DNA of 64,000 nucleotides from Chlorokybus atmophyticus (GCA_009103225.1 RHPI01002533.1:1920616-1984615), one strand, 5' to 3'. Shown: positions 16,691-47,452, counted from the stretch's first letter. Program-made: numbers and translations. The notes: a model not told the origin generated them from the letters alone.

Positions 16691-17039
<349 letters not shown>

Positions 17040-23921: not shown

Positions 23922-23939
23922 CACCGGTAATTCTGGACC

Positions 23940-24585
23940 CCCCGAATTTCTGAAAATTCAGCGCATTTGCCCTGAATACTCATCTGTTTTATGTGTGAAC
24001 TCGCCACTTGCGTGGCTGCAGAGGTCGCTGTTACGATTGCTGATTATTCAGGCCAAATGCCCTGAATACAAGCAATGGATATTCACACGTTTTAGTCATG
24101 AATAATTGTAGTTGTCCATCTCGCACACAACCTCCTACATGTGAGTAGTTATTCACTCGCGACAGAACTGCATATTCAGTCTTCTTAGGTATACATGGTC
24201 CTAGACTTGTACCATGGCACCAAGTGATTATTCATACTTTGTGTGCATGAATATTTACAGCGCCTGCTCTCACACTATGTCCTCCTTATAGGTAATTATT
24301 CACACGCATATTGGCTTAATGTTCACACATACTAAAGCTGTTTCAACAGCACATGTACCACACTGGCGAGTGATTATTCATACGATTTGTGATTGAATAA
24401 TACAGCATATCTGCTCTCACACAATCTTATATATGAGTGGTTATTCACCCATAGTATGGTTGAACACTGCTGCCTTTGGTTGACTTTTCACGCGAATGAT
24501 AATTGAATAATACAGCACTTCTGCTCACACACATAGTCCTACATATAAGTGGTTATTCACTCACATTTTGGTTGAATAATCACTG
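23940..24585. repeat. Left subterminal array of TGAATA/TATTCA motifs
   Basis: More than 15 copies in both orientations (e.g. CCTGAATAC, GATTATTCATAC, TTATTCACTC, TTGAATAATAC). Confidence 0.85.
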
Positions 24586-24732
24586 CATCTTGCTATCGTC
24601 AACAGCTGTGACATAGCATAGCTGTGACATAGCACATAGCAATCAGTCCAGCCGGTGAATTTGGACAACAATGTCAGCTGAATGGCAGCTGACTCGAACA
24701 ACAAATTCACTGATGTCTACAATGTATGCTAC

Positions 24733-27237
24733 CTACTTCTTGCTGCCACGACCACGCCCACCGCGCCCACCCCGCCCACCCCGGCTGCCCTTCCCACGGC
24801 CCCTCCCGCGCTGTGTGGTTGTGCCTTCCTTTGCTGGCTCCCTCACCTTGATACTCTTCAGCAACCCAACAGGCCAAAGTAGCAACAAACCCGGCTCGCA
24901 CTCTGCGCATACATCAACCACACATGAACTCAGCTGACTTGCACAATGTTGAAACTGTTCGTGCAATCGCATGCACACAAACGCGTTCACCTTTCAAGTG
25001 GGTCACTTGCACTCCAACCCCATCACGCTTGAAGCTGATTGGCAGAGGCACAACCTCTTCTTCCCCTGGTCCGGGACGTCTGGTCCTAGTGATGGGAAGA
25101 CTGCGGCTGAACTGGACCACCATGTTGCCCTCTCCAATCTTCTTGCCATGAAATTTGTTGACAGGATTGATGTCGCTTACGTGCGCCTCCCCTACTGGTT
25201 CTTTGCGCCCGTTTATGAACAGTTGGACTTCACTGCCAACCTTCATCGTCGGTGCGGTGTCGTCCTTGTCGCTCAGCTTTTCCTGCGCATGCAAGTGACA
25301 AACACATCAAGAGGTACACACATACACATATGTGATCTCTCATACAGCGCTTGCGAAGCGACCTGCCTTCTGCGAGTCGTTGTCGCTGTTGTTGGGGCTG
25401 TCCCCCTCGTTGTCCGGGGCGCTGTCCTTGGCGCCATCTTCACCGCTGTTCTCGCTTCTATCTGTCTCAGGCATTTCTGAATACGTTGGCTCATCCTGCG
25501 ACAAGGTGACACGACGTGTTAACAAGCTTACAACCGTCACGCAACGAATGCGCGCCTGCCGCAGGTGACAGTTTGTGTGCAGCCAGAAGAACGCAAGAAG
25601 CCCATAAGATCAAGTACATGGTGCTTTCATACCTCCTTTTGCTTGCCGCTCTTCTTCTCCAACACCGTCTCCTGCTTGCCAGTCGAGTGGCCTGCCTCCT
25701 GAGACTTGTAGGGAGCCGGTATCGAGCGAACAGTTTTGTTTGTTTTCTTTTTGGGGGGGCTTGACACCTCATCCTCCTGCCAACAGCATGAAGTCAGATG
25801 GTGAGCCACAACTCAGTGCATTGCCGCTCTATCAAGTCCAATGCTGCGTACCTCACCAGACACTTTGCGCTTCCCTGAGCTGCTGTCACGCACATCAGCA
25901 CCCTGCTTGGCACGTGCCTGAACACAACAGTCATGAACCATCATGAACACATGTTTAGCAAAGTACAAGCAGGAGCGGCATCTGACCTGTGAACCAGTAG
26001 CAGGAGAACTTGAGGGTTGTGGTGCAGTGCCTTCCTTGTTACCTATCGCATACACAAGGCACCGATCACAAAAGCCTGCATATACACACAGTACTCCAGC
26101 AGCTGCCTGCGCGCGCAAGACGCGGCTCACGCTGCGAGGTGCCATTTCTGTCGTCGCTGGCGTCGCTGGCGGGATGTGAACGCGTGGGCGCCGTGCAATT
26201 ACAAGGGGTCATCATACGCACCACACAACCTGCATACATAAGGCACCATCAAACACAAAGCATCGTTCTCAACACGACATTGACAAAGCCAACTTTGTGC
26301 AAACTGTAGGTCACCCTCTGAGGTGGCATCCTCGTCGTCGCTGGCAGATTGCACTTCTTTTGACTTCTTGGGCTTCTTCTTGTTGGCTTTCTATCAAGCA
26401 CATGGCAAAGGCACTCAAGACATGCACATCGCACGAACACCTTAGTCACTACATGACACACACCTTGTTGTTCTTGTCGCTAGGCCCTCCCCTGCGCCTT
26501 GGCACAAAGCCCCCCGCGAAAGCCTTCTCCATCATCTCCTTGTAACGATTCCGACTCTTTTCTTTCTGCTTCTCTTTGTGCTTGGGGTTGCTGTATCCCT
26601 TTTTGTTGCCCAGATACTGTTGAATCTTCAAACGCGCCTACCCACTAATGAGAAAGTTGTGAAGGCCAACACATGCAAAGCAAACTCCTCCCAGCTCAGA
26701 CAATGCTGCCATATTGCATGACGGCTCATGTAACTGTGGGAAATTGCCAACCATTTGATAGGAGAGCTCTGGATTCAGCAGATGCCAGCATTTGGTTGCA
26801 AGAGCGAACTTGAATGGGTCCTGCTTCGTTTGAGTCTTCCCCGGCATCATGCGACAGTACTCGTAGCAAATCCGGCCTTTGTCGGCCAGCTTGGTGACCT
26901 TGCGACGATCACGGGCATGATGCTTCCCACGCCAATGTAGGACCTTCAGTGCCTGCATGATTTACATTGGTGCACTAGTACAACATGGGACAAAACAGAC
27001 TTCGGCAGCAAGGTCTGACATTGATTGCGGATGCTTGATGCATAAGCTCACTTTTAAGGAGACCATTGCTGTGGTCTCAAGATCACGCAGGTGAACAGTC
27101 GCCTCACTGGTTTCCCACTCATGCTGCAGCTGCTCATCAGAAGGACCACCAGCATTCTTCCCCCATATCTCTTCGTCCAAATTCTCCCATCCTTCGCTGC
27201 AGTTGCTGGACCGCCCACCCGACGTGGTGCCTGACAT
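24733..27237 (-). CDS. Multi-exon TnpA-like gene (C-terminal Tnp1/En/Spm-like domain and RGG tail); probably disrupted
   Basis: KVGSEVQLFINGRKEPVGEAHVSDINPVNKFHGKKIGEGNMVVQF...PLPISF...LLWPVGLL matches the pattern of the CACTA TnpA C-terminal domain (Transposase_23/DUF8039-like). It ends QRGRGRGKGSRGGRGGRGGRGRGSKK*. Internal exons are only partly resolved. Confidence 0.65.
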
Positions 27238-27430
27238 GATGATGCCCTCCTGTAGATAGATCAAGCTTGCTTTACAAGTCAGTTGCAACCGCAACCCTAA
27301 TCAACCTCAAGTCTTGGTTGACTCAAGTGACTGCAGGTTGTAAGCCATGTGGACTTGCTTGTTGACTTGTCACAGCAAGCAAACCATGTACCTTGCAAAA
27401 GAAGTGTCTCTAAGCTGCTTGCACAAAGGC

Positions 27431-27716
27431 GTGCTTGTGAACTTGTCAAACAGGCACCCAGCAAACCAAACACCCAGTACCTTGTAGAGTAGAAGCTTCT
27501 TCAGCTTCTTTCCAGCTGAACACGAGAAAGGTAAGCCTAACAGCAAGCTAGCAGGCAAATGGCATGTGCATGCACAAACATGTGCTTGTGAACTTGTCAA
27601 ACAGGCACCCAGCAAGCCAAACACCCAGTACCTTGTAGAGTAGAAGCTGCTTCAGCTTCTTGCCAGCTGAACACGACAAAGGTAAGCCTAACAGCAAGCT
27701 AGCAGGCAAATGGCAG
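27431..27716. repeat. Tandem duplication of ~134 bp (period 151)
   Basis: GTGCTTGTGAACTTGTCAAACAGGCACCCAGCAA...GCAGGCAAATGGCA at 27431 and 27582. Confidence 0.9.
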
Positions 27717-28252
27717 TCCAGAATGCTAGCGGCACAACACCATGCTGTATTTGCTAATTGCAACGAAGTGACCCAGCATGCAACCACTAGAAAAGCAGTG
27801 CGACAAGACAGCTGACAACGCTCGCTCACCTCGCCACAGCACCGCCGCCGCCAACACAACCAGCAAGTACGCCGGTGCTGTGGGACAATCAGTGCAATTC
27901 CCGGTGCGGAAATCCCTGCAATCAATGGAATGCAGTGATCGTTCGGAAAATCCACATCAGCAATTGTGCTGGTCGGACACCAGTCGCGTCTCCGCTTGCT
28001 CCGACCGCAATAGGCCGCACGAGCAATTGCCGTGGAAATTGCCTTTTGTCGAAACTTTGATTGCCAAAATGAACTCTATGTTTATTGGTCCATACAAACC
28101 AAGCGAAATTACATTCTCTATTTCCGATGAAATCTTCCATGTCCGAGGACGGTGTCTGTGTGGCTTACCCCAAACTATAAGTAACCCTAACCCAAACATC
28201 CAATGCATGCTGGTAGTTGTATAGGATATGTGAAGTGCTGTGTGCTGCAACA

Positions 28253-29162
28253 ATGGACCCCCCTGTACCCATGCGCACCATGAATGAGGCTCTAACGCAG
28301 GCGCTCCTCGCAGTCGGGCGGCGATTAGTGGGACTAGGTCAGGTCTTGACACAACCGTGGAACGGCTATGTGGACTCTGGCGATGCTCGCTATCATCAGG
28401 TATCTTTCTCGCTATTCATGGTGTGAGTTGCGTGCGCTATGTCACTCTGCATGCTGCTGACTATGCATGCCACTATGCATGTGCCATACTGTTGCGCATT
28501 GTTTGTACATGCGTATGCCTTGTGTGCGATTTGGGTTGAGTTTGCCTGTGTAGTGTGCATATGTTTGTCCTGCTATGATAGGAACGCCTATATATATGCA
28601 CAGCTCTGATTGCTACCATGCAGCACCCTTGCGCGTTACATGCCGTGCATGTCATGCCATGCTACTGCCTGAATGCGTGTCCAGTTCATGTCCATAACAA
28701 TAGAGGCGCTGCCTATGCATTTGCATCAACTTCTGGCGCACGTTTATGAATGAATGCGATGCAACATGCGAGTTAACCTGTAAACTTGTTTGTCAGGTCC
28801 AATTATGCAATTGGGAGCTTTCAACTCGTGGAATTGTTCATCAGGCACCCATTGCGATTGCAGCTACTGTACAAACCGGTGTGTATGTGGCAGTCTCCGT
28901 GCATGAGAACACTCCCTCGCCTCCTGATGCGCCTCTTCCTGCTCGCACTATCATTGACTCGGGCACCTATGGCGCTGCTGGCCTGCGCGTTGTGATCGAG
29001 TGCGACAACAATATTGCTGCACGCTGGAGTGTGTTTACTGGCTCCGAAGTCCCTGCACATGGTGCAACGCCCGGTACCAATCTCACACAAACTTGTAATG
29101 GAATTTTCCCCACTCGCGACCCTCCTAGTGAACCTAGTGACTCTAGTGACTCGACGCAATGA
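28253..29162 (+). CDS. Two-exon orphan gene, 170 aa, unknown function
   Basis: Exon 1 28253-28399 (49 codons, CAG|GTATCT) and exon 2 28797-29162 (CAG|GTC) are in phase and have no internal stop. TAACCCTAACCC lies ~60 bp upstream of the ATG. Confidence 0.6.
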
Positions 29163-29849
29163 CCATTGCTCTACACACACTTTGTTTGCCCTTTACACTA
29201 TGGTTACCGCTGAGCTGCTCTGCTGGTAATTCTCCAAGTGTGGCTGTTGCATGTGCAATCACTGATAACAGTGGGGTGTGTGCCTTTGTGCAACTTGGAG
29301 ATCTAGCAGCAGATCAGCTCAGGCACAACCGCCACAATTGTGTTCACAACAACATAGTGACTAGCAGATTAGTTACATTACAACTATACTACACAACAAC
29401 TACCAAACTACCACCAAACTATACAACTACACAACAACAACAACTACACAACAACTATACAACTACCAAAACTACCACCAAACTATAGGCCTTGTGCAAG
29501 GATGACGCAAAGATCTGACCTTGTACTTTGTATTACCTCATGGCCGTAGCACAGCCTGCAAGGCAAAGCGGGTTGCGCTCAAAACTGTTGGACACAAATC
29601 AGGCATGCAAGCGCCTAACACTGGCAGTAGAATTGCCCAAACATGCTGTTGGAAAAACCCCTCACAACTGCACTCACATATGCACAAATACAAGGTATGT
29701 TTGCGCAGCAGAAGAAGTGAACACGGACTTTTGCGACACACGCGCGCATACACACACATGAGGGCTTACAATCAACTGCCCCAGCTGACTGGACACCATA
29801 CACACACATGCACATTCATGTGATACGCATGCAAGGATGCATTTATCTG

Positions 29850-30180
29850 TCCCTGTCGTTGCTGGAGCTCTTCCCAACTTCTTGGGCACCGTGACTGGCG
29901 GTGTCCTGCAAACATGCTGCAGGCAATGCTCAACCTGTTGATAGCAGCTGTAAGAATGCCAAGACACCCAAATCACAGAGCCAAATACTCTGACCAAAGT
30001 CTCATCCACAAACACACCATGCCTGGCATGCGAGCTCTGGTTTACCTGCTGTCTTGGAAGCAGCCGGCTGAATCATCATACCCTCTGTTGAATGCATGCA
30101 AGCATCTGAGTCAAGACCAAATACCTACCTCATGTTCGACGAGATCAACTACACTGGACCTAAAGCGACCGGCCATCGCT
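29850..30180 (-). CDS. Small spliced orphan ORF (MAGRFRSSVVDLVEHE|VNQSSHARHGVFVDETLVRVFGSVIWVSW...)
   Basis: Phase-0 donor GAG|GTAGGT near 30130 and acceptor CAGCAG|GTAAAC near 30053. The 3' end is not resolved. Confidence 0.35.
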
Positions 30181-31362
30181 GAATGGTAGCTGTTTACCTG
30201 TAGATCACACACCGTAGTTAACCAACAGTAGAGTCAGAAATGGAGCAGGGAAATGACTCTTGAGAGACACAATGCTAGCGCAAGCACACACAGAAAGAAC
30301 ACCTTTTTGCCGCAGCATAGGCAAGGCCACTGAGGGGTTATGCCCAAGGCTGCCCCAGCGGCTTGCAGCAAACAGCTTTTGTGCCGCAGCACAGGCAAGG
30401 CCACTGAGGGGTTATGCACAAGGCTGCCCCAGCGGCTTGCAGCAAACACCTTTTTGCCGCAGCACAGGCAAGGCCACTGAGGGGTTATGCCCAAGGCTGC
30501 CCCAGCGGCTTGCAGCAAACAACTTTTGTGCCGCAGCACAGGTAAGGCCACTGAGGGGTTATGCATAAGGCTGCCCCAGCGGCTTGCAGCAAACACAGCA
30601 CGCACAGCACGCACACACACACACACACACATGCATGGCATGCGCAAGGAAGCACGGCATGCACGTATCTGCTGTGTAGCCGCTAGCGCTCCAGCATCGC
30701 CGCCGCCGCCGACGACGACGATGACCTTGCCTGCGCCGGCGCCGCCGCCGCCGACCTTGACTAAAATCTGCATGCGAAATGGCTGCTGTAACTCCAAAAC
30801 CCTAAGTCCATGACCTAAGTCCATGGACCTAAAGCGACCGGCCATCGCTGAATGGTAGCTGTTTACCTGTAGATCACACACCGTAGTTAACCAACAGTAG
30901 AGTCAGAAATGGAGCAGGGAAATGACTCTTGAAAGACACAATGCTAGCGCAAGCACACACAGAAAGAACACCTTTTTGCCGCAAGGCCACTGAGGGGTTA
31001 TGCACAAGGCTGCCCCAGCGGCTTGCAGCAAACAGCTTTTGTGCCGCAGCACAGGTAAGGCCACTGAGGGGTTACGCACAAGGCTGCCCCAGCGGCTTGC
31101 AGCAAACAACGTTTGTGCCGCAGCACAGGTAAGGCCACTGAGGGGTTATGCACAAGGCTGCCCCAGCGGCTTGCAGCAAACACAGCACGCACAGCACGCG
31201 CACACACACACACACATGCATGGAATGCGCAAGGAAGCACGGCATGCACGTATCTGCTGTGTAGCCGCTAGCGCTCCGGCATCGCCGCCGCCGCCGACGA
31301 CGACGATGACCTTGCCTGCGCCTGCGCCGCCGCCGCCGACCTTGACTAAAATCTGCATGCGA
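30156..31362. repeat. ~670-bp direct duplication, each copy containing a tandem array of 60-75-bp units
   Basis: GGACCTAAAGCGACCGGCCATCGC... at 30156 and 30825; internal units AGGCCACTGAGGGGTTATGC.CAAGGCTGCCCCAGCGGCTTGCAGCAAAC. Confidence 0.92.
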
Positions 31363-31494
31363 CGTATCTGCCTGAGTTTCTTGCTAGGAACTCAAGATCG
31401 CTGGCGCCGTCGCCACCGACCTCAAAGACTTCGCCGCCAACCACGGCAACCTCGCCGCCTCCCGGCCACAACCTACAACAACATGTCCGGGCGG

Positions 31495-32150
31495 TTAGGG
31501 TTAGGGTTATGACATATGGCGAAACAGAGTCACAAAAACATTCACCCACACCACAGGGCCGGTCTTAGGTCTTACAGACCGCCCCAGCTTCTCACCAACA
31601 CATTCACAGAAAAACAAAACCACAAGGCAGGACACTGAGGTCTTACAGACCGCCCCAGCGACTCACCAGCACACATGCACAGAAACACAAAAACAAGGCA
31701 GGTCACTGAGGTCTTACAGACCGCCCCAGTGAATCACCAACAGAATCACAGAAACAAAACCACAAGGCAGGTCACTGAGGGCTTACATGCCGCCCCAGTG
31801 AATCACCAACACATGCAAATACCGGAAACCATAAGGCAGGACACTGAGGGCTTACATGCCGCCCCAGTGAATGACCAGCCCACATACACACACGCACGCG
31901 CACAAACAAAACATGCATGCAGGCAGGCTTGCACGTATCTGCCTAAGTAGCTCTGCATCAACCAAGGATGGCTGCCGCCGTCGCCGCCAACCTCAAGCAC
32001 CTCGCCGCCGACCACGCCGCCCACAACCTTTATAACTAAAGACGCTGCCGCGGCCGACCAAGACAACCTCGCCGCCGACCACAACAACCTCCCCGCCACC
32101 AACCTTGCAAACTACAACAACTTACAAAAACATTAGGGTTAGGGTTAGGG
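31495..32150. promoter_or_regulatory. Telo-box-like (TTAGGG)2-3 motifs at a probable divergent promoter region
   Basis: TTAGGGTTAGGGTTA at 31495-31509 and (TTAGGG)3 at 32133-32150, each next to a related GC-rich leader. The regulatory role is inferred from plant telo-boxes. Confidence 0.45.
31555..31870. repeat. Degenerate ~70-bp tandem array with core CACTGAGG(T/G)CTTAC
   Basis: Five copies; the reverse complement resembles the intronic array at 41130-41420. Confidence 0.85.
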
Positions 32151-32531
32151 ATGCCGGCTATGGCGTTAAAGGTGATAGCCCATCACCGATGGACCATCAC
32201 TGATTTGCTTAGGGTTTTGGTGTAGCGATCGAGCAGACAACTTGCAACTGGCAAGGCTGGGCGGCAAGGGCGGCGTTGTTGGCGAGGTCGGCGGCGGCGT
32301 TGGCTTCATTGCTGAAGTGCAAGTGTTGTGTTTTCGCTTGGTTGTTGTAGTTACTTCATTGGGTCCGAGAACCCTGGCGAGGTGGTTTCTTGCAGCTTCG
32401 GGTGGGCTTGCTGGAGGGTTGTGGCACTGCTTCCAACAAGGTGCAGCACATGCCGTGCTTGTCTTTGTTTGCATGCATGCCCGTTTGATCATTTCGCTAA
32501 CTGGCAAAAGTGCATGTTGTCTATGTTGTTA

Positions 32532-32987
32532 GCCACCACTTGATGCTAACCAGAGGGGCGGCCTCGTGCGTAAGACCACCTCTTGCTCAGTTTTCAAGCT
32601 GTTTTATTTGAGCATGCACTCTTGTTAGCCACCACTTGATGCTAACCAGAGGGGCGGCCTCGTGCGTAAGACCACCTCTTGCTCAGTTTTCAAGCTGTTT
32701 TATTTGAGCATGCACTCTTGTTAGCCACCACTTGATGCTAACCAGAGGGGCGGCCTCGTGCGTAAGACCACCTCTTGCTCAGTTTTTAAGCTGTTTTATT
32801 TGAGCATGCACTCTTGTTAGCCACCACTTGATGCTAACCAGAGGGGCGGCCTCGTGCGTAAGACCACCTCTTGCTCAGTTTCCAAGCTGTTTTATTTGAG
32901 CATGCACTCTTGTTAAGCACCACTTGATGATAACCAGAGGGGCGGCCTCGTGTGTAAGACCACCTCTTGCTCAGTTTTCAAGCTGTT
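32532..32987. repeat. Near-perfect 96-bp tandem repeat, ~4.7 copies
   Basis: Units start at 32532, 32628, 32724, 32820 and 32916; there are no spacers. Confidence 0.97.
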
Positions 32988-33136
32988 TATAGTTTTCATT
33001 GTGGCTGAGGCTAAAGTGTGCATGCTCAGGCTTGTCTGCGTGCTCAAATAGGCAGCCGTGTGTGTGTGTGCATGCTCATGTTGCTCAACTATGTGTGCTT
33101 GCTTTTGGCTGTGAAGCTTTCCTCAGGTCGTTCATC

Positions 33137-36100
33137 ATGTCCAAGCGAAAGCTCGTTCCCCTTGGCCAGTTTAAGCCTGCAGGTAATAAGTAATGTATGC
33201 TTGTTCAGCATGATTATCGTTAACATGTGGTAACACTGGTCATGCACACAGACAAGAAGCACAAGGGTCCAGCGCACAAGAAGGAACCTGCTAAGAAGGA
33301 AGCTGTCCTGCAGAAACCCTGCAAGAAATCAAGTAATGTAGCGCTGTTCCAGCTGACCATACTAACGCATGCTCACTGCGGTTGTTTGCCACCATTGTTG
33401 CAATAACACTGTCTATTGCAGACCTTTTTGACACCACAAAGGCTCAGTTGCTGGAGGGGTTCAATAATTGGCGGAAACTAAGGGAGGAGGAGAAGGCTGG
33501 GAAGGCGAAGATGTCCACAGAATACAGTTGGGATGTCGTGGTTGAAGTAATGCAGAAGAACCTGAATGAAGATCCTCGCTTGCTTGAGCTCGACAAGAAC
33601 TTGCAGATCTGCCTACGGAAGTTCGTGGAGGACCAGCTCAGGCTTTGTGATCCGGAGGCAGCTGCTAGGGGTATGGACCTCGGGCATTTTGGCCTTGAAG
33701 ATGTTGTTACCGATAATGACATCCATGAAGAAACGAAGACAAAGTGGGGAAAGAAATTCTCTGACTGGAGGAAAGCGAAGGCGAAGAGCAAGAACCTCAT
33801 GTCATGGGGTGAGCTGGTGGTCTTTATCAAGAAAGCGCTGTGCAAACCAGACTTGGCTTCCCTCAATCGAGAATGGAGGCTCAAGCTACGGCAGTATGTG
33901 GAGGAAGAGCTAAGGCTATGTAATCCAGAGGCAGCTGCTATGGGCATCGACATCGGGGAATACGGTCTTGACTACGAAACAGAGACGCCCAAGCAGCAAG
34001 TGGAGGCCCAAGCCAAGCAGCAAGCCGACGCGGAGGCCAAGCAGCAAGCGGAGGATCAAGCCAAGCAGCAAGCGGATGCTGAGTCCAAGCAGCAAGCGGA
34101 TGCTGAGGCCAAGCAGCAAGCGGATGCTGAGGCCAAGCAGTAAGCCGACGCGGAGGCCCAGCAGAAAGCTGAGGCCCCACCCAAGTCCCAGACTGCACCA
34201 ATGCAGGAAGGGCCTCGACCTGAAGCCGGTACCTCTGCTTCTGCTGTTGAACCAGAAGACGGTCTACCTCCAGCAGAAACAGAGGGCGAGTTAGAGCTGG
34301 TTGGGCTGTTGCATGATAAACACCGGCTTCGGCTTTTCGATGCCTATGCAGATGGGAATTGCTTCTATGCCTGCCTTGCCCAGTCGCGCCCTCGCGTGAA
34401 CGCTGCGTGCTTGACACACGCCAACGCAACGGACAACGGGTCTTTCTGGCGAAGCATTGTGCTGGACAATGGCAAACAGCTGCCAACAAGAGAGCAAGCG
34501 CAAAAGCTTCGGAAGATCTGTGCTAAGCAGGTCAACCTTTATTGGTTGCTGGAGTATCGCAACTACGGGGCCTGTGGTGACATGGGCCAGGATTACAAAA
34601 GGATGGCCAGGAAATATGGCGTAACCAGGGCACTTAACAAAAAGCAACTCAAGACTAAGCAAGATGAAGACAACGCTGTAGAGGCTCTGCAGAAAGTGAT
34701 CGCTGAAGAGAGCGTTTATGCCGATCAACTGCAAGTGGCGATCATGGCNTTGCAAGTGGCGATCATGGTGCACGCTCTTGGCATTCACATCGGTACTGTG
34801 CAGCTCACTGAGGTTGCCGACGAGAAGCAGTACTGCTGGGAAGCAGAGCACAACAGGGCGGCCTCATCGAAGGCGATGACGGGAGGTACTACACAGTGGA
34901 TGCCAAGGGAGAGAAGCATTCCGTCAAACCTGTAGTGGTGATTGGCGAGGATGTTATCGATGTGGCTGGCCATATAATCATTGGCAACACGGATCCAAGC
35001 AANAATCCAAGCAAGCCCAGTGCGCATTACATGTCTGTTGGTGATGCAAATGGTATACTCTCTTGGCAGCGCAGCGACATGCCACCAGAAGTCCTGCGCT
35101 GCATGTACCCTGCAGATGCCGAGCCCCAGCCCCAGCCCCAGCCCCAGCCCCAGCCCCAGCAGCAAGCCCCAGCCCAGCCCCAGCAGCAAGCCCAGCCCCA
35201 GCCCCAGCCGCAGCCCCAGCCCCAGCCCAAGCAGCAAGCCGAGCCCCAGCCCAAGCAGCAAGCTGATGCCGAGGCCAAGCAGGCCAAGCAGGAGGCCAAG
35301 CAGCAGGCCAAGCAGCGGCAGGAGGCGGAGGCCAAGGCCAAGCTGGATGAGGACAATGCCAAGCAGCGGCAGGAGGAGGCCGAGGCCAAGCAGAGGCAGG
35401 AGGCGGAGGCCAAGGCCAAGCAGGATGAGGCCAATGCCAAGGCCAAGCAGAGGCTGGAGGCCGAGGCCAAGCAGCAGCAGGAGGAGGCCAAGGCCAAGCA
35501 GGATGAGGCCAATGCTAAGGCCAAGCAGGAGGAGGCCGAGGCCAAGCAGAGGCAGGAGGCGGAGGCCAAGGCCAAGCAGGATGAGGCCAATGCCAAGGCC
35601 AAGCAGAGGCTGGAGGCCGAGGCCAAGCAGCAGCAGGAGGAGGCCAAGGCCAAGCAGGATGAGGCCAATGCTAAGGCCAAGCAGGAGGAGGCCGAGGCCA
35701 AGCAGAGGCAGGAGGCGGAGGCTAAGGCCAACGAGGCTAAAGACCAGCAAAGGCAGGAGGCTGAGGCCAGGAGCCAGCAGGAGGCTGGCGCTATGCAGGT
35801 TGATGCCGCTGTTGAGGAGGAGGCTGATGCTATCAGTGATATGTCATTTGACATCAGCATCGCAGCAACCAGTGACACCAGTGACCCCAAGAAACGCAGA
35901 CGCCGCCCGTCACGCCGCCAACAGCGAGCTGCTTTGCAAAGGGACAACACGCCTTCCGGTGCTTTCCAGAAGCTGCATCGTGTGCAACAGGGGGAGCGCA
36001 CCGTGGACGAATATCATGCGCAGTTTGCACAATTGTGCGGGGTGGCAAACACCTGCGTTGAGCTGGTGCCTAAGGCCCTTAAACTACAACTGTTTCTCCA

Positions 36101-36550
36101 GGGACTCAGGAAAGTAGTGCGCATTGGCGTGCCCAAGGGTCCTTGCAACCAAGATTGGAATGCTGATCAGTTCGATTTGCTTGTGTCGGCTGCCAAGACT
36201 TATGAACGGACCTTGCTTGTTAAACAGCAAGCACACCTCCTAGATCGTTCAAAGTTTGAGTTCGGCAAAGCAAGGCCAAGCAGGTTGCAGAAATTGGAAT
36301 GACTGGAACAAATCAGCAGTCGTCGGGAGGGCAAGAAGCTGGCACATCAAGCTGCATATTAGCGTGAGCAGGAGATGATAGCTGCACAGGAGACCCTTGA
36401 GCAGCAGGAGCAGCTGCGTAAGCAGCTGAAGCGGCAGAAGGAGGAGGAGCGCCAACAGATAAAGCGAATGGCTCAGCAGGGAAAGGAGCAGCGGAAGCAG
36501 CGGCGGGAGCAGAAGGAAACACAGCAGCAGCAGCAGCCGCAGCAGCAGAG
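33137..36550 (+). pseudogene. Large cargo gene: two tandem helical (DEK_C-like) repeats, AEAKQQ linker, OTU deubiquitinase, coiled low-complexity tract, retrotransposon Gag-like domain, Q/E-rich tail
   Basis: Spliced start MSKRK (33137). OTU elements: DGNCFYAC (Cys codon 34360), YADQLQVAIMVHALGIHI and AHYMSV (His codon 35025). Gag-like KLHRVQQGERTVDEYHAQFAQL...LQLFLQGLR. In-frame stops at 34141, 36300 and 36360, and a frameshift near 34885. Confidence 0.8.
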
Positions 36551-37678: not shown

Positions 37679-37885
37679 CCGCCCACCCACCCGACACAAA
37701 ACCTCCTGCGGGTTTACTGCGAACGCAGGATGTGGTCCTGCAGAGCCGTCTCGCGCAAGTCACGTACTGTAGACTTTGTGCACATGCTCAGAGCCTCTGG
37801 TTCATGACTTTCGCGAGTCAGCTTTGGTTGGACCATACCCTGCGTTCGCAGTGAACCCGCAGGAGGTCTAGTCTCGGGTGGGCGG
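37679..37885. repeat. ~205-bp imperfect inverted repeat (long hairpin or MITE-like)
   Basis: The arms are ~80 bp. Core ACCTCCTGCGGGTTTACTGCGAACGCAGG (37701-37729) pairs 28/29 with 37839-37867. A third core copy is at ~37202-37221. Confidence 0.85.
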
Positions 37886-38073
37886 ACGGCGCAACAGGGC
37901 ATGAAGGTGCTCTGGAAGAGACCTTGCCCAGGAGGTTAGTCTTTCCCGTGCTGGCAAACAGAGGCATCCTCGTGATTAAGACCTCTTGCTGACTTTATTG
38001 GGTCGCTCATTCTGTTGTTGGGTTTGAGTTCAGTCTAACAAAGTGGCCAGCAATCAAGAGCTACCTCTACCTT

Positions 38074-39349
38074 TCAGTAAAAAGGAGGGTAATCAACAGT
38101 GAAGCCTATTGCTTCCAGCAACAGCCTGCCTACATGTTCAGAGTAAGTTGGTGGAATGGCATTCTTGACTTCCGATTCCGCATCCATCCACTCCACCTGC
38201 ATGGCAGACTGCCACCCTGCAATCGTGCCACGGCAGGATGCTTGGCCGTACACTGGGTAAATTTGCCCTCCCCCCGGTAGCAATTGCCGGCGCTGCTCCG
38301 GGTGGGTGGCGTCTTCCGTTTGAGTCTATTGGTGTGCGTGTGATCAGAAGGGGTGGGGGCTTGGGCCATCGATCGAGCTCTCGACCAGGCAAGTCTTGCA
38401 GTTTCAGACAGCTTTGACCACCAACACGAACCATTACGTCGTAACCCTCACGCACAGCTGCCATGTTCCAGTTCTTTATCAAGATGTGGTGCAGCCGTGG
38501 GTCCTCAACGAAATCGTCGTACTTGATGGCATGTTTTCCTGAGCCACATGTTTGCCTGAGTCGGTGCTTGCATGAGCGTGCGCATGTAGATACTCTGCAG
38601 TATACCTGTGTTGGCATCAAAAGTGATGATGTGGCCTGCATACAAGGAGCTCATTCCTGGCCAGTACACCACAACGCGGCATGCTACCAAAGACTGCCCC
38701 TCATCAACAATCTCCTTCCGCCAAGCAGCCAGTGTCGCGACATCGTCGACAACCGCGTTCCCCTTTGGCATTCAAGAGTAAGTTGGTCATGCATGCAAGC
38801 GCTGTTTTGCTGTTTGCAAGGACAGTTCAACTCGACAACCGCCAAGCAGCCAGTGTCGCGACATCGTCGACAACCGCGTTCCCCTTTGGCATTCAAGAGT
38901 AAGTTGGTCATGCATGCAAGCGCTGTTTTGCTGTTTGCAAGGACAGTTCAACTCACCCTGTTGTTGACATCGTCTTCGATTACAGTGGACTTGCCGCGAC
39001 CGTTGCGCACGAGCTGACGTCGAACCACATTGCACATCTGCCCATCGCGATATGCTCCAGGCCGTGCCCAAGGCAGGTGATTCATGGGCTCGCCGTCCCA
39101 CTCAAACTTCGAAAGCGAGCACTGCAGGCAAGTGCACTCCTCCCAAAAGAAATCTGGCCTCATGCATTGTGCCAGCAGTCTGCATTGCCTCACATTGTCC
39201 CCCCTTGCCTTGTGGTGCCAGCAGGCTTCATAGAAGCCATACTGCTCACTGTACAGCTTGCACTTCTCTTCATGCTGTTGCAGACGTCTGTTGTTGCCAT
39301 TCCTAACCAAGTATGCTTTGCAGAAGCTACACACTTTGACGCCGCGCAT
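38074..39349 (-). CDS. Cys-rich/C2HC finger, Tudor domain and C-terminal half of a phage/actinobacterial-type C5 DNA methyltransferase; one frameshift
   Basis: CSFC...QHEEKC; spliced Tudor VVVYWPGMSSLYAGHIITFDANTG|KHAIKYDD; after a one-base shift in a G6 run (38270-75), IYPVYGQASCRGTIAGWQSAMQVEWMDAESEVKNAIPPTYSEHVGRLLLEAIG, which resembles the AMGIDWM..ELxEAIPPAYTEHIG end (motifs IX-X) of that family. Confidence 0.65.
38718..38954. repeat. 121-bp-period tandem duplication spanning an intron/exon junction of the Tudor gene
   Basis: CCGCCAAGCAGCCAGTGTCGCG...GGACAGTTCAACTC at 38718 and 38839. Confidence 0.92.
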
Positions 39350-39639: not shown

Positions 39640-42600
39640 ATGAGCTACTTTCGCAGGTGTTTTTGCCGCGACTGCAAAGGGAGCAAAGTGTTCACACACA
39701 ACCACATTAGAAGGGCTGAATATCATGAAAACTTTGGCAAAAACATGTGGTGTGGCACTCCAGAAGCTGTTGCTCCTGAATACCGTAATCGACTACAACC
39801 CCATGAACTTGAAGCTGATGCTGCTGTTGCTGCTGCATCCTTACACATGTCGTCAGGTACAAGAGCAACTTCTCTACAGCTGTGAATCTATACAACATGC
39901 TGTCTGATCATTGATCTGGCTTGCCCCAGGTGAAGCTCTCCATGACACCGAACAATTGCTAGTTGGGAACGACGCTACTGAACATGTTGACACAGGCACG
40001 CCGTTGCAACCGAGTGTTGAATCTCCTTTCAATGTTGCAGCCAACTTGCAACCAGCAGGTACGACCTGACTTGCGTGGCATGTTGACATTGCTGATGCTG
40101 TGCCTCTCATTGTTCATGTGCCACTAGACTCATTGCAGCTGGCAGGTTGTAATCCGTGTGCTCATAAAGGACAATGTGCTTATGGAGAACAATGCGGATC
40201 TCACCCAGCATTTTATGGAATTGAGAATGCTACATTGCAAGAGCATCAAGGTGCCAGAACCAAATCCACAAATGGACAAGTAGAGCCTGAGACGCCAGTG
40301 CACTGCACCTCCACTGCTGAGCAAGTCGATGCGGAGCAAGGTGATGCGGAGCAAGGTGATGTTGCCGGCGAAGACCAAGACTATGAAACCGATGTGGAAT
40401 CGCAGCCAGACGAGGCTAAATGCGTTGATGATGCCATGCTACTTGACAAAGTGAATGCTGCGTTGCTGGATAATGCAAGCAACCCTGTTGTTTTCGGCTC
40501 TCGTACAACCCCTCTAGGCATTTTCATGCTGCTATTGGTTCTGGCGCAGCTACATCGAATACCCTTCAATTTCATGAATAAACTGCTCAGGTTGGTGGGC
40601 AAATTACACTGCTGTCTGCTGAAACATTAGCCTGTTCAGAACTGATGTGTTTCTGTGTGCCAGGTTGTTGCGTGGCATCCTCTTGCCTAAGGAGAATAAG
40701 ATGCCAGGCAGCATGCACGAGCTATTGAAATGCCTTTAAGGCCTCAACATGGGCTTCCACACATATGATGCCTGTCGCTGTAATCACATGTTGTATTGTG
40801 GCCGACATGCCAACAGGATACTTTGCAAAGGTGAGCAATTGTTGCAAATGTTCACTACAATGGGATTTGATTAGCATGTCCCATCAGCATACGACTTGCT
40901 TATGCAGTCTGCAAGGCCCCTCGCTACCGCAACATAGGAGGTAGACAAGTTGCATGGAAGATTGGGCGTTACTTTGACGTGCCTGCTGCGTTGAGGGCTC
41001 TGTACCTAAAACCTAGTGTTGCTGCGGAGATGATGGCGCACACAAATCGAAGTCAGGATGGGATTATGCGATCTATACACGGTAACATTGCCAAGTTCAG
41101 TGGTAAATGAGGCACGACTGTGTGCATGATTGTGTTGGTGAGCGGCTGGGGCAGTCCAATGCAAGCCCTCAGTGTCCGTGCCTTGTGCTTTTGTGTGCGT
41201 GGCGCTGAGGCGGCATGTAAGACCTCGGTGTCCTTGCCTGTGTTTGTTTGTGTGTCGGCGTGGCGCTGAGGCGGCATGTAAGACCTCGGTGTCCTTGCCT
41301 GTGTTTGTTTGTGTGTCGGCGAGGTGCTGGGGTGGTATGTAAGACCTCAGTATCCAGCCTTGCGATTGTATGCATGTTTGAATGTGTTGTGGGGCTGGGG
41401 CAGTTGGTCGTAAGCCCTTGGTGTACTTGCTGCTGTCAGACTCGCCAATGTTCAAGGACACTGAACAACGCTACAGCCGGTTTGCCAAAGAACCACGCAA
41501 TGTGCGCCTAGCGATGTTCATCGACGGGATGAGCCCGTTCAAAGATCCGCACAAAGGTATAAAAGAGCATTTTTCTTCCTGTATGCTCGTTGCAGTGTAA
41601 CTGTACGAATGGCAGCAAAGGGTTTGTTGAGTTGCAGGGAACTATGAGTTTTGGGTTGTCACAATCTCAGTGTTGAACCTGCCCATTGCCAAGATGCACA
41701 AGACAGACACTACATTTCTAGCTGCTGTAATCCCTGGACCCAAACAGCCAGAGAATCTACAGGCTTATCTCAAGCCAATTATTGACCAGTTGGGAGATCT
41801 CTGGGAAGGTATGGTTTCAACGCAGCTAGGATAAGCAGCTTCCATTACTGCAGTCATGCTTGACAAATGCGCATAACTGAGGCATGTAATCTGCTGGCAT
41901 TTGTTGTAGGTATAGACATATATGACAGCCACCGCGACGCAGTTTTCCGTTGCAGATCTATTCTGAAGATTGTAATCCATGATTACCCAGGTACGCAAGC
42001 AGCAGCAGTGTTTGCACTTACTGTTATCAGTGTCTGACTGTATCTGTATATTGGACTGTCCTTGCAACCATGGTTGTGGCTACTGAAGTACATCATGTTG
42101 GTTGCGCAGCTCTGGCAAAAGCTGCCTTGCAAATGGCGCATGGAGCCATCTTTGGCTGTTCAAAGTGCGAGTGCAGCGGAGAACATGTGGAAATTCTCAA
42201 AAAGGTGATATATCAAGGCCACCGCCGGTACCTACCGGATGACCATCCTTACAGAGTTGATGAGCGTTGGCCGCAACCAAAACACAGACCTCCACCACCC
42301 ATGCGGACTGCAGAGAGCGTGTACAGGTGAGCAATCTCAGTTGATTGCGCATTTGGTTGCAGAACATAGGTATGTCAGCAATGGATGCCATGTGATCAGG
42401 TATGCTATGACATCTCGCAACAGCAAGCGTCCACTGCACTTTAAGAGACATCCTTCAAAGACCTCCGGCATCCTTGGACTGAGCTGTTTTCACGACCTTC
42501 CATATTGGCTACCGTTACAAAAATCTGTCAAAGGTCATGTGGTTGGCCCTATGCACATTTTTGCCAACCTGGCAACCAACTTTGCAAATCTCCTAGCTGG

Positions 42601-44525
42601 CTTGCGCGACAGCATCGAATCACGAGAAGATCTGCAGCAGCAAGGCCGCATGCCTGAACTCTGGCTAGAGGTACGTATGTAGTCGGCCTCGTTGACATGT
42701 GCCATAGTTGGATTTAACCAAGGACTTGAACCTATGTGCTGCAGACAGAGATGAAGATGAAGGATGGAAAGGAAGTCGCAGTCAAGGTAAAACCCCAGGC
42801 TCCATGGACAATCACAGATGTAGGACTGGTTGAGCAATTGCTCTCCAGCGTGAGGGTTTCAAGCACTTTCGGCTCGAAACTGCAGTCTTTCACAAAGCAT
42901 TTAGGTGAGATAGCCGTTATATGTTTTGTGTTTACGCTAAAGCAATGATTCTCCATGCATGGAACTTTTGACATGGAGCATGCAGGCTCGATGAAATCGC
43001 ACGACAAGCACAACTTATGGTCGGTCGTTTTTCAGTACGTGCTGCGCTCTGCACACGACATTGGAGAAGATCAGAAGAGAACCATCTTCAAACTATGCGA
43101 CATCTATCAACGGCTGACTGCATTGGAAGTAAAGCAGTCACACCTCGAAGAATTGAAGGTTGGCTTTAATAACACTTTACTCTGCATGCCCAGCTCCTAT
43201 GGCATGCGTAGCTTATTACTTAGTGCAGGTGCTGGTGCATGAGGCACAGTCTGAAGTGGAGCTGTTCTTCCCGCGAACTTCTCTCACAATGATGCTGCAC
43301 CTCCTTGGCCATCTACCAGAGCAGTGCATGTGGCTTGGTCCGACGCGTGACCACTGGGAGTGGGCACATGAACGCTTTATGCAGTGGGTGAAGCGCATGA
43401 TATTTGCAAGGCAGCATGTGGAAGCAAGCATCTGCAAAAGGCAAGTTTTGTGTGAGCCCACTGAGAGTTACGTGCAAACTTTCCACATTGTTTGCCTTGT
43501 TCAAGTGCCAGTTGCATCTGCAGATACTCTATCCAGCTCATGCTGAACACTTACATGGACACATTGAAGCGACTTTTCTCCGACATCAGTTTGCGATCGA
43601 GCAAGCAACGAGATGATGACGACTATGTGCTCTGCGGACGGAGACACCGTATTGAGGTTGGGGATAAAGATAGTAAGACAAGGCAGGAGCTCGAGTGGTG
43701 GTTGGCTGAGAATGACGATGAATACAGGCTGTTAAAAGAGTAAGTTGCTTTGGGAGTTGCTGTTTTGTACGTGATGTCCAACGCGCAGACAGTATGATTT
43801 ATTTATGGGTTGCTGCTACACAGAGAGTTCAGTCGGGAGGTGAACAAACGCAGGATGGCAAGGGAAAGGGCTCAAAAACAAGGACATGTCGTGGCAAAGG
43901 ACATGGAGCATATGACTGAGCTGCATCACTGGCGTGGACCTGCTAGGGAGCTTACAAAGCACGAGATGGAGCTGTTGAGCGGTCCAATCTTTCCAAAGTA
44001 CATCAAGCGATACTTCAGAGCACGCTACAAGGACATCGGTCAGTTCAGAGCAGAGGAAATGGAGAAGAAACTCCGCACCATGGACTGTGGCGTGTTTATC
44101 GTTGGGCGTGACTCAGATGACCCAACCAAGAAGATCCATTGGTATGGCAGGGTGCAATCTTTTGATGTTGTGGTGATAGCTGGTCGGGAGCACCAGCTGC
44201 TCAGAGCTAGGTGGTACATGAGCAACCAAGTCCAGCACAGTGGAGGATTTGCAATCCTAAGAAAAGACAAGCCCCGCTTTGCAGAACAAACCTACCTTGA
44301 TTGCAACCTAGTAAGTGGCTGTGTTGCAATCGGTTTGGCGTGTGCTTGGTGTGATGATAGTAAATTGAAATAGTAGTATGAAAATGGCTGATGAATATCC
44401 CTTCTTGCTGGCAGGTCAAGGGCCAGTGGTTTAAGGGAATTGATCCCAATGACAACAAAGTAACAGTAGCGCTTGTTAAAGACAGGCGCAGTCTCATGCG
44501 TCGAGGCATGCACCGGGACACTCCG
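39640..44525 (+). CDS. CACTA TnpD-type DDE transposase (Transposase_21, DUF4218, DUF4216 regions), many exons, one in-frame stop
   Basis: CFCRDC; RNVRLAMFIDGMSPF; LNLP...AVIPGPKQP; IHDYPG; HRRYLPDDHPYR; MKSHDKH; MLHLLGHLPEQ...GP...WAHERFM; WYGRVQSF...RARWY. In-frame TAA at 40737-40739. Confidence 0.95.
41130..41420. repeat. Intronic ~61-bp tandem array with core GTAAGACCTC
   Basis: Units GGCATGTAAGACCTCGGTGTCCTTGCCTGTGTTTGTTTGTGTGTCGGCG inside a transposase intron. Confidence 0.88.
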
Positions 44526-44623
44526 GTAAGAGGAGAGTTAACAACGTTGTCCATTAGAATCTGGATGTCCTCATATATCCTGGGTTTTGGCATCACATAC
44601 AACCATCTTGTGTACTTGGTGCA

Positions 44624-46655
44624 GGGTGCCCAAAGCGAAACCAATAGCGCCTCGAGCGAGGTGTCATGGACCACACGCCGCGACTGGCATTTTGAGTACA
44701 AGAGGTACTGTTTGCGACTGTGATGCCTCGTATCCCTACTGTGAGACTGTAGACCTGGCCACTGAACCTTTGTTCACAGGATGAGACCGAGACTGGAGCT
44801 GGATGCGTTGGAACATCGGGAACATGAAGACTACTGCTTTGTCTGCAAGGATGGGGGCACCATATCTGGCTGCGATGTGGAAGGTTGCTGGAAAAGCTAC
44901 CACGCGCACTGTGTCTCTATGCCACCTGTGGAGGATGAATATTGGGAGTGCCCAAGGCATGAGTAAGTGGACTTCATTGCAGCAAATGCTTGGCATCTTG
45001 TTGTGAGGAACTTCACTCCTAGAACCATCATCACTTGTACTGAACCAAAACACAGGTGCCATGTGAAGAACTGCAACGAAGCAGCTTTTCAAGTCTGCGC
45101 GACGTGTCCAAACAGCCTCTGTCGACGGCACGCTGTGGGTAGCATGGTTGAGGTTACGTGCTCGCGATGCGCTGCGTACGAAGAAGGTGGTGCTCCAGCG
45201 CAGCTCCCAAGGGAGAGCCTTGCTCGTCGTTCTCTGCCGGGCAGTTGCGGTAGGGTTTCACAACCTGTGCAGAGTGGGGTTCAACACGTTGAAGAGAGTG
45301 GGGATGAGGCTAACAATGGTAAGCTGCTGTGTGCTTGAGCTTGTTGATTTGCGTTGTGGTTCTTGCCCAATTGAACCATTTATGGCTGCAGAGGCAGTCA
45401 CGATGGAAGTTGACGATGAAGACGAAGAGGGCTGTAATCAGCAACCCACGACGGCTGCGGCAGTTGTGGACCTCGTGGGCAGCGATGATGATATCATGGT
45501 GCTGGACGATCCAGTCAGCAACCCGCAGCCGTCAACACCGCAGCCACTGTTCATTTACCCTAGTGCAAGTGCACGTGATGCGGTGCCAGTGCTTGAAACG
45601 GACAGGAGGTTGCTGGATGGCAGACAAGAGCTCAATGACACCATCCTCCACTTCTTTTGCAGGTATGTGATTTGCTGCGTCTGTGTTATTCGTGTATCTC
45701 ATATGTACGTGGGATGCACATGCAGATACAAGGAAGAGGAAATCTTAGGCAGAGCAGATGGCATTCAGGTGAAGCTGTTCCACCCGCATTTCTACACCAA
45801 GATCGTGCGCTGCCATAGACAAAATGACTGGCACACGAGCAATCACAGGATAGACAGGTGGGAGAGTGATCCGTTTGCCAAGGACTTGCTGGGAGTGATT
45901 GTCAACCCAGACACGCGGTGAGAATAAGCGCCAAGAATATCTTGCTGAATTGCTGCTGTATTTGCAAACTGGAATTATTTTGATTGTTCACAGGACTCAC
46001 TGGAGTCTGCTGCTTGTGTGCAATCCTGGAGGCCAACTTGGAAGTGACACGCCGCCTTTACTCGTCCATCTCGACTCCCTTGGCCTGCATCGCAACGTTG
46101 ATGGACCTATGCGCGCTTACCTTGACTACATGTGGGGCAGAAAGCATGGAAGTGACTCACAACGACGCTTCTCTCCCGAAAACGTACAGCTTCTTGTACC
46201 ACAGGTAGCACACGTTGCATTGCACTAGTGATGAGTTTGCATGCATTCTGTCACAAGCACTGATTGGATGCATGCACATGCATTTGGTTTGCAAGCATTG
46301 ACACATGTTTGTGCAGGTCCCTCAGCAGAAGGATGGAGTTGCGTGCGGGTTGTTTGTCATGCTTTATCTTGACAAGTTTATAGATGGGGTACAAGCTGGT
46401 CCAATTGACCCAAACGCACGGATATTTCAACAGGTACAGTTCATGCATGTGCACTGCAATGTTTACAAGTGGAAGGTGCTTCAATGGCACTGTCGTGTAG
46501 GCCGACACGTGCTTAGTAACCACATGTTATTGCTGTGTGGTTGTGTGCAGATGCAAAGGAGTTGGTTTCATCCTCAAGTGGCAGACAGGTTGAGAAGACG
46601 ATTGCGAACACTCATGGACAGTATGTTAGCACAGCAAAGACATGAGTTGAGCTAG
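44624..46655 (+). CDS. PHD finger, Cys/His-rich finger and Ulp1 (Peptidase_C48) SUMO protease; phase-compatible continuation of the transposase
   Basis: EDYCFVCKDGGTISGCDVEGCWKSYHAHCVSMPPVEDEYWECPRH; CHVKNC...CATCPNSLCRRH; ELNDTILHFF; THWSLLLVCN...LDSLG; VPQQKDGVACGLFV (His/Asp/Cys triad and oxyanion Gln); stop at 46655. Confidence 0.92.
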
Positions 46656-46849
46656 TAGTAGCAGGTGGTGTGTAGCATAGCAATGCTGTAGTCCATATCA
46701 GAGTTGTCCCCCACCATCAACTCAAAACAGCTGTGTAGAATTGCTGAGCAACTCTGGCTTTGACATATACTAGATTGTATATTAGAATTAGCAGTGCAAT
46801 CTACTTGGTTTTCAATCACATTCGGGACTTGGCAAAAATGAGAGTATAT

Positions 46850-47425
46850 GTCTATTCGTGTGGGGTTGAATATTCACTAACAGCTAGGAGTTAGTGCAAA
46901 ACGTACTGCTTGGTTTTGGAATGGTGTTGAAAATTCACTCAAAGCTAGGACTTAGTGTGAATCGTATTGCGTAGTTTCAGATTGGTGTTGAATGTTCACT
47001 CACATCTGTGGCATGAAACTGATGAAGGTTATGAATATACATGTGTGACAAGCTGATCAATTGATTATTCACGGGCAGTTGGGACTTGGTGAGTTTAAGC
47101 TGTCTGTTATAGCCACAAGCTTATGCCCCTTCATGAATGTTCAGGCAATGTATAGCTGAATATTTAGCAGAGCACATGCTGTGTCCATTCACAATTGCAT
47201 GCCTTGAACATTCAATCGATTTCAACTGAATATACGAGGTATATGGGTTTTGAAAGGTGGCATCGATTTATCGTGTGGATATTCACGTGATGTATAGGTG
47301 AATGTCGCGATCTCGTTTTGGCAGGGATTGCACAAATTGTACGAAAACACTTGAATATTCACTCGATAAAAAGCTGAAACGGTAAATCCAACGAATATTC
47401 AGTGCGTTTGCCATGAATATTCAAA
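46850..47425. repeat. Right subterminal array of TGAATATTCA-like palindromic motifs
   Basis: More than 12 copies (TTGAATATTCACT, ATGAATGTTCAGG, ACGAATATTCAGT, ATGAATATTCAAA). Confidence 0.85.
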
Positions 47426-47452
47426 AATTCGGGGGTCTCATAATTACCGGTG

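Follow-up and report, generated by a model that had tools for sequence, protein, structure and literature searches.

A large CACTA/EnSpm transposon of Chlorokybus atmophyticus with a TnpD-PHD5-C5HCH-Ulp1 transposase gene and probable chimeric passenger genes

What is the 23.5-kb unit that interrupts an integrase frame in the genome of Chlorokybus atmophyticus, and do the genes inside it form a system against silencing? We examined a 64-kb window, i.e. the whole stretch of DNA that was analysed (GCA_009103225.1, RHPI01002533.1:1920616-1984615; 64,000 nucleotides), in which a nest of retrotransposons surrounds an element at positions 23922-47452 (23,531 bp). An earlier note on this DNA had described the element as a giant CACTA transposon with an anti-silencing toolkit. 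One part of that description proved secure: the element is a large CACTA/EnSpm transposon, and its transposase combines TnpD, PHD5-C5HCH and Ulp1. The reading that we favour, and consider probable, is that of a single transposon with this transposase, the remaining genes of which are chimeric passengers and not a demonstrated anti-silencing kit.

The evidence for the unit itself comes from its ends, where the following features were found:

19413-19862, minus strand, second integrase C-terminus, an uninterrupted paralogue of the interrupted one
23919-23921, target-site duplication ACG, left copy
23922-23949, plus strand, left terminal inverted repeat (perfect over 11 bp; agrees with the right end in 24 of 28 bases)
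23950-24620, left subterminal region with TGAATATTCA-like motifs in both orientations
46860-47424, right subterminal region with the same TGAATATTCA-like motif, including a 61-bp repeat at 46861-47002
47425-47452, minus strand, right terminal inverted repeat
47453-47455, target-site duplication ACG, right copy

The element starts at 23922 with CACCGGTAATT... and ends at 47452 with ...AATTACCGGTG, the right terminus being the reverse complement of the left CACCGGTAATT start. The termini are CAC...GTG, while the plant-type CACTA pentamer is absent and reads CACCG. The inverted repeats, previously called exact, were perfect over their first 11 bp only; over 28 bases the agreement is the 24 listed above. 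A 28-nt terminal pattern with four free positions had exactly two matches in the window, inverted with respect to each other (0 expected), and the terminal arms were 76% complementary over 70 nt. The 3-bp target duplication (ACG on both sides) and the restoration of the interrupted integrase were both confirmed: deleting the element together with one ACG gave a continuous minus-strand frame of the integrase C-terminus kind, in which ...QKFQPGDFV is followed directly by YLLRKTKD..., and the rebuilt empty site aligned without gaps across the junction with the paralogous integrase at 19413-19862. This alignment is as near to an empty-site proof as a single window gives. The TGAATATTCA-like motif was represented by 25 matches in the first kb of the element and 22 in the last kb; it was nearly absent from the interior and occurred outside the element at about 0.25 per 500 bp.

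EnSpm/CACTA elements are defined structurally by CAC..GTG termini and 3-bp duplications (PMC12730594), and subterminal repeats are also part of the definition (PMC2613891). All of these are present here: CAC...GTG termini with short inverted repeats, a 3-bp duplication and subterminal motifs, together with a TnpD-type transposase. Ends, duplication, subterminal motifs and empty site are concordant, in agreement with the earlier description of a single 23.5-kb unit. We also considered that the assembly might be at fault, a mis-join or collapsed or expanded repeats in the interior making the 23.5-kb unit and some of the gene defects non-biological. In favour of such errors are the single Ns at 34749 and 35003, with short direct duplications on both sides of each, a perfect 121-bp and a 99%-identical 160-bp duplication, and a host armadillo (ARM)-repeat gene whose repeat number differs from the JGI model. 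Against them, the two ends agree in inverted repeats, subterminal motifs and target duplication, the interrupted gene is exactly restored and the gene order is coherent on both strands, features that are hard to get from a mis-join; we regard an artefact as very improbable.

The largest gene of the element comprises the following parts:

40070-46655, plus strand, multi-exon transposase gene with TnpD core, PHD5-C5HCH and Ulp1 (start codon not fixed)
41436-42321, plus strand, Transposase_21 (tnp2) core in four exons (profile 8-206 of 213, best E 1.5e-10)
41517-41540, 41975-41992 and 42157-42168, plus strand, transposase motifs seen by eye (DG..PF, DYPG and CSKC, i.e. C(2)C, respectively)
43235-43456, plus strand, DUF4218 block (E 1.2e-9), with HLLGH, i.e. 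H(3)H, at 43298-43312 and ER at 43361-43378 seen by eye
44829-45155, plus strand, NSD-type PHD5 and then a C5HCH finger, a predicted histone-reader tandem
45631-46397, plus strand, putative Ulp1/SENP-type Peptidase_C48 domain in the last three exons

Our Pfam scan covered the whole element in about 220 stop-free frames of at least 60 codons. It placed Transposase_21, DUF4218, PHD_NSD, C5HCH and Peptidase_C48 on plus-strand exons, in line with the TnpD-PHD-Ulp1 gene claimed before. EnSpm transposases are expected to have C(2)C and H(3-4)H motifs ahead of their final catalytic residue (PMC12730594). The PHD finger matched PHD_NSD (E 1.2e-6, 29.1 bits, cut-off 23.9) and zf-HC5HC2H (6e-7, 30 bits), and its best matches in the PDB were the PHD5 fingers of NSD2 and NSD3 (E 7e-11), including 4gnd; C5HCH was found on the next exon (E 1.7e-5, 25.3 bits, cut-off 26.3). 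By sequence, the pair is an NSD-type reader tandem, resembling the tail of NSD histone methyltransferases. Peptidase_C48 was represented by two colinear matches below threshold on consecutive exons, with E values of 5e-3 (profile 87-136) and 3.5e-3 (profile 161-188) and scores of 17.1 and 17.7 bits (cut-off 20.7), while the middle exon had no match in the PDB. The Ulp1 motifs were recognised by eye as His (45989-46006), Asp (46067-46084) and Gln..Cys (46323-46349), the exon strings being LND..F, H-W, D-S-L and Q..C-G. Profile and motif signals combined make a convincing case for a predicted Ulp1 domain. The gene makes it plausible that the element is of the autonomous type. We found no relative in a HMMER search with a TnpD exon (191 aa) against 1.84 billion representative proteins, and none in metagenome scans with the 28-nt terminal pattern and with a TnpD exon.

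The elements that come closest to this transposase by domain content are the CACTA-ULP elements of grapevine and rice (Cactavine-2, -3, -4, -5 and -13; PMC2528002), which share with it Tnp2/Transposase_21, an Ulp1 C48 protease and, broadly, the plant lineage. The Chlorokybus element differs from them in the NSD-type PHD5-C5HCH between TnpD and Ulp1, in its host, an early-diverging streptophyte alga, in its CACCG instead of CACTA termini and in its additional OTU-like/Gag and Tudor genes, and the likeness of the Ulp1 part is one of domain content. The theme of a cysteine protease with PHD is also shared with Ginger1, the transposase of which has OTU or Ulp1, with or without PHD, at its C-terminus, and with Mutator elements that carry Ulp1 and Helitrons that carry OTU (PMC2836005), although these belong to other transposase superfamilies. 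OTU and Ulp1 are alternatives on the transposase in Ginger1, whereas in Chlorokybus the transposase has Ulp1 and a separate gene has the OTU-like motif. Among algae, enlarged EnSpm elements with several open reading frames (ORFs) are described from a red alga (PMC6431247); these Chondrus elements are likewise much larger than usual and have several ORFs beyond one or two, the comparison being limited to size and ORF number.

At the other end of the element lies a gene in the position of TnpA:

24736-27237, minus strand, left-end multi-exon gene (ATG 27237, RGG-rich C-terminus)

Its composition was coding-like, with higher GC at the first than at the second codon position (GC1>GC2), in 24917-25306 and 26641-26961. 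We detected no Pfam match even at E up to 10, no PDB match, and no homology to TnpA, TNP1 or Ptta. The label TnpA-like therefore finds no homology to stand on in Pfam or the PDB, while a multi-exon gene is indeed present in that position. Second proteins of the TnpA type are poorly conserved (PMC2613891), so the missing homology does not exclude a TnpA role, which we infer from the position only. The arrangement can be compared with maize En/Spm and the soybean element Tgmt* (20.5 kb, a similar size; PMC2613891). They have in common with our element the 3-bp duplication, short inverted repeats, asymmetric subterminal repeats, a TnpD-type transposase and a poorly conserved, putatively DNA-binding second gene. 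In Chlorokybus, however, the second gene is on the opposite strand at the other end instead of arising by alternative splicing of one transcript, and it has no match to the TNP1 or Ptta domains.

The earlier note had also listed two orphan genes. The 27.4-33.1 kb region turned out to consist mostly of tandem arrays and duplications with frames that are not coding-looking, and a smaller array was found in the transposase gene:

27416-32988, tandem arrays and segmental duplications, noncoding-looking (151-bp x2, 74-bp x4 and x2.7, 69-bp x4.4, 96-bp x4.8)
41159-41355, minus strand, 61-bp array (x3.3) in a transposase intron

GC-rich internal repeats near the 5' region of the transposase gene are known from En/Spm. 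A 24-nt imperfect palindrome, CTGAGGkCTTACAnnCCGCCCCAG, had five copies at 31564-31867 and another three in inverted orientation at 41205-41350 (0 expected), and the 74-bp and 96-bp arrays were filled with motifs related to it. With the internal arrays and these eight copies located, the claim of motif-dense tandem arrays was borne out. The array motifs were specific to the element within the window. Between the OTU-like and Tudor genes, at 37522-37908, we also observed an inverted repeat of 79 nt (78% complementary, 91 nt apart) and, nearby, a direct copy of a CCCACCCACCCGA...ACCTC motif; the repeats of this region may be related to the array motifs. Telomere-like short repeats of the CCCTAA/TTAGGG type (2-2.5 units, in opposite orientation) occur inside the element at 28182-28197 and 31493-31509, and they are too short for interpretation.

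The inverted motif arrays bracket the region from 31.6 to 41.3 kb, which raises the question of whether the interior genes came later as separate insertions, e.g. a retrotransposon that supplied the Gag part, nested in a smaller CACTA element. The surroundings, themselves a transposon nest, and the presence of half a Retrotrans_gag domain inside a DNA transposon would agree with such a composite origin. Against it, the repeats found include no long terminal repeat (LTR) pair, inverted-repeat pair or target duplication at the edges of an interior segment, the element holds no reverse transcriptase, RNase H or integrase, and its interior showed no DNA similarity to the 40 kb of transposons that flank it. 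Later insertions with target duplications of their own, which would have told against the anti-silencing reading of the earlier note, were looked for and no sign of nested insertions appeared. In particular, a nested element at 31.6-41.3 kb was rejected, because the right-hand array is intronic, with a bona fide TnpD exon on each side of it. We consider a composite origin quite unlikely.

The first of the two cargo genes between the arrays and the transposase was the following:

33137-36302, plus strand, OTU-like/half-Gag chimeric gene (ATG 33137, two canonical GT-AG introns)
34141-34143, plus strand, in-frame TAA in an AEAKQQ repeat (CAA in the sister units)
34351-34368, plus strand, OTU-like Cys motif DGNC, by eye
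34853-34860, plus strand, apparent 1-nt frameshift between the OTU-like halves
35019-35039, plus strand, OTU-like His motif AHY, by eye
35955-36110, plus strand, half Retrotrans_gag domain (PF03732; E 1.4e-5, 25.7 bits, cut-off 24.1, profile 47-96 of 97 only)

Its product would comprise, in order, a basic N-terminus, a duplicated domain, the OTU-like motifs, low-complexity PQ and AEAKQ repeats and the half Retrotrans_gag. The open frames of the gene reach 268 and 263 aa; frames of at least 260 aa are expected 0.003 times and seven were seen, some of them in low-complexity repeats. The OTU-Gag gene of the earlier note was thus recovered in its gene structure and in half a Gag domain, while the OTU part came down to the DGNC and AHY strings seen by eye, about 220 codons apart and in two different frames, without an OTU match in Pfam and with a broken frame. 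At the Cys loop there was a weak PDB signal to two nairovirus OTU structures (E about 0.8); the His half had no PDB match, and a single-sequence structure model of the OTU-like piece reached a predicted local distance difference test (pLDDT) score of 43, too poor for fold comparison. Of the Gag domain only the C-terminal half was present, with no pol genes, reverse transcriptase or integrase nearby, and a PDB search with the Gag-like piece returned nothing meaningful. The N-terminal part (33421-34000, plus strand) also contained, in duplicate, a domain of some 95 residues, ...LRLC(D/N)PEAAA.G(M/I)D(L/I)G..., without a database match.

The TAA at 34141-34143 is a nonsense mutation in the OTU-like gene. 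The single Ns at 34749 and 35003 each stand between short in-frame duplications (21-bp and 12-bp), which suggests assembly joins; because both are nearby, the frameshift near 34855 is less certain than the nonsense codon.

The second cargo gene lies on the opposite strand:

38077-38325, minus strand, probable source of the methyltransferase claim (ARLQGG 38211-38228, KNAIPP 38149-38166)
38138-39349, minus strand, gene with Cys-rich N-terminus and Tudor-like domain (exons 39349-38958, 38771-38607 and 38536 downward; GT-AG sites)
38718-38954, perfect 121-bp tandem duplication, in which a splice acceptor and 45 nt of the Tudor exon are repeated

The Tudor-like domain is split by a 70-nt intron, with its second half (KYDDF...) seen by eye. 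The exon at 38607-38771 had a single PDB match over 30 residues, 7de9_A (E 0.036); 7de9 is the Tudor domain of Arabidopsis PDS5C, solved with H3K4me1. The Tudor-like exons, each taken alone, had no Pfam match. A single-sequence model of the Cys-rich N-terminus (pLDDT 49) was too poor for fold comparison. The half methyltransferase that had been attached to this gene was not recovered: motifs I (FxGxG), IV (PCQ) and VI (ENV) of C5 DNA methyltransferases were absent from a six-frame motif scan, the DNA-methylase profile (PF00145) was not matched in any of the roughly 220 frames, and no methyltransferase was found among the PDB matches of the putative frames. The strings ARLQGG and KNAIPP, resembling motifs IX and X, are 17 codons apart and in different frames; a methyltransferase remnant at 38077-38325 was accordingly rejected.

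How, then, would the element have come to hold these parts? On the reading that we favour, it would have inserted by cut and paste into the integrase region of an older Ty3/gypsy-like retrotransposon, TnpD cutting at the inverted repeats and a second element-encoded protein, most likely the product of the left-end gene, binding the subterminal motifs. The PHD5-C5HCH reader could tether the transposase to a particular chromatin state, and Ulp1 could, in the course of transposition, deSUMOylate a factor of the host or of the element, as has been suggested for CACTA-ULP and Ginger1. The OTU-like/half-Gag and zinc-finger/Tudor genes would be chimeric acquisitions from host genes and a retrotransposon, carried along, and this is most simply how they are read. 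The cargo is fragmentary or chimeric, since the Gag domain is only a half, with no reverse transcriptase or integrase nearby, and the OTU-like gene carries a nonsense codon and an apparent frameshift; at least one cargo gene is decaying in this copy. Half a Gag domain and an interrupted OTU-like gene fit acquisition followed by decay, and the Tudor exon resembles, in its sequence, a plant host-type domain, that of PDS5C. Gene capture by CACTA elements has been reviewed (PMC13317346), and the Tnp2 and ULP1 proteins of grapevine and rice were interpreted as transduplication (PMC2528002).

Several points weigh against this reading. The OTU-like gene was functional until recently and is no random fragment, because it starts with an ATG of its own and combines a basic N-terminus and canonical introns with very long frames. 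Its frameshift, lying within an assembly-ambiguous stretch, is possibly not genuine. For none of the cargo pieces did we find a parent gene in the host, in searches limited by length window and database content. Moreover, the functions given to the reader and protease domains are inferred from domain identity alone. Word-indexed homologue searches with the OTU-like frame and the Gag-like region came back empty; here length window and database content were limiting, the genus being apparently represented by the Chlat1 proteome only.

The alternative is that Ulp1, the OTU-like protein, PHD, Tudor and the arrays are a co-adapted anti-silencing system, which would remove SUMO or ubiquitin and read histone methylation at the cognate arrays. 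There are precedents for transposon proteins that act on the epigenetic state of their own family, namely VANC of VANDAL/KIU elements (PMC13317346) and the TET/JBP proteins of fungal EnSpm, Plavaka and KDZ elements (PMC12730594). VANC proteins recognise short motifs in noncoding parts of the element, and some VANC genes carry Ulp1; the Ulp1-bearing VANC/KIU of VANDAL cause sequence-specific hypomethylation through such motifs (PMC13317346). Likewise, escape from methylation has been suggested for fungal transposons with TET, EnSpm among them (PMC12730594). In the Chlorokybus element, the element-specific arrays with eight copies of the 24-nt imperfect palindrome against none expected, the likeness of the Tudor exon to PDS5C/RDM15, an H3K4me1 reader, and the real gene structure of the cargo would suit an anti-silencing role. 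We saw no homology to VANC or TET/JBP in it, and the likeness to those systems is conceptual only. Against a co-adapted system, the methyltransferase module is absent, the OTU-like part is without any profile support and its gene is interrupted, and no other copy or homologue was found in the homologue, HMMER and metagenome searches. Integration targeting accounts just as well for reader domains on the transposase, chromatin-guided integration fitting them at least as well as anti-silencing does. We regard the anti-silencing reading of the cargo as speculative and unlikely. The boldest version would place at the base of the streptophytes a CACTA family in which the fusion of the transposase with an NSD-type reader and a SUMO protease is native. 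Selection would also maintain in it an H3K4me1-type Tudor protein and an OTU-like protease, both acting on the element's own arrays and serving either to steer integration or to keep the family unsilenced; this version seems to us doubtful. If true, the family would have a chromatin module of several components, of a kind not described among CACTA elements, and the partnership of TnpD and Ulp1 would be older than the land plants.

The ingredients themselves are already known in DNA transposons, both as Ulp1, OTU and PHD on transposases and as epigenetic modifiers borne by transposable elements (PMC2528002, PMC2836005, PMC12730594, PMC13317346). What the single chimeric transposon that we favour adds is a well-bounded, apparently autonomous-type CACTA element outside the angiosperms, to which the plant-style TnpD, the subterminal repeat architecture and the Ulp1 association are thus not confined. 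Among the streptophyte lineages, that of Chlorokybus is the one farthest from land plants. The PHD5-C5HCH between transposase and protease and the PDS5C-like Tudor gene are candidates for chromatin reading by a DNA transposon. Should these genes be intact in other copies, the family would be tractable for studying a role of reader and protease in targeting, repair or escape from silencing; should they not be intact elsewhere, the element would be one more case of CACTA gene capture.

The retrotransposon that bears the insertion was represented by the following features:

19954-20227 and 50630-50894, possible LTRs of the Ty3/gypsy-like element (84-86% identity)
23601-23897, minus strand, PHD finger of the Ty3/gypsy-like retrotransposon (PF00628, E 1e-6)
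47574-48074, minus strand, Ty3/gypsy-like integrase-like frame, without Pfam match
48850-49230, minus strand, RNase H of the Ty3/gypsy-like retrotransposon
49173-49778, minus strand, reverse transcriptase of the Ty3/gypsy-like retrotransposon

Chromoviruses carry a chromodomain after the integrase. The retrotransposon has a PHD finger after its integrase, at the position of that chromodomain; compared with the PHD finger of the transposase, it showed no similarity. A fragment at 20950-22466 (plus strand) showed the order of copia elements, with a gag zinc knuckle ahead of an integrase.

Rfam and tRNA scans of the window found nothing. One host gene was located on the left side of the window:

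5028-7025, minus strand, host armadillo-repeat gene, long open frame

The best database match of its protein was the EukProt entry jgi/Chlat1 Chrsp1S03196, residues 1-301 of which were 100% identical to window positions 7869-6967, the rest differing only in the number of 42-residue units. This match assigns the window to Chlorokybus, Chlat1 being the JGI portal for Chlorokybus atmophyticus/melkonianii. The gene (5028-7869, minus strand) has more of these 126-bp (42-residue) tandem units than Chrsp1S03196, which is either repeat collapse in the older assembly or copy-number variation. Finally, nearly perfect AG/TC dinucleotide microsatellites of 175-290 units were present at 4201-4636, 16691-17039 and 57507-58086, with a single N inside one of them (4250) and another N at the end of a second (17040).

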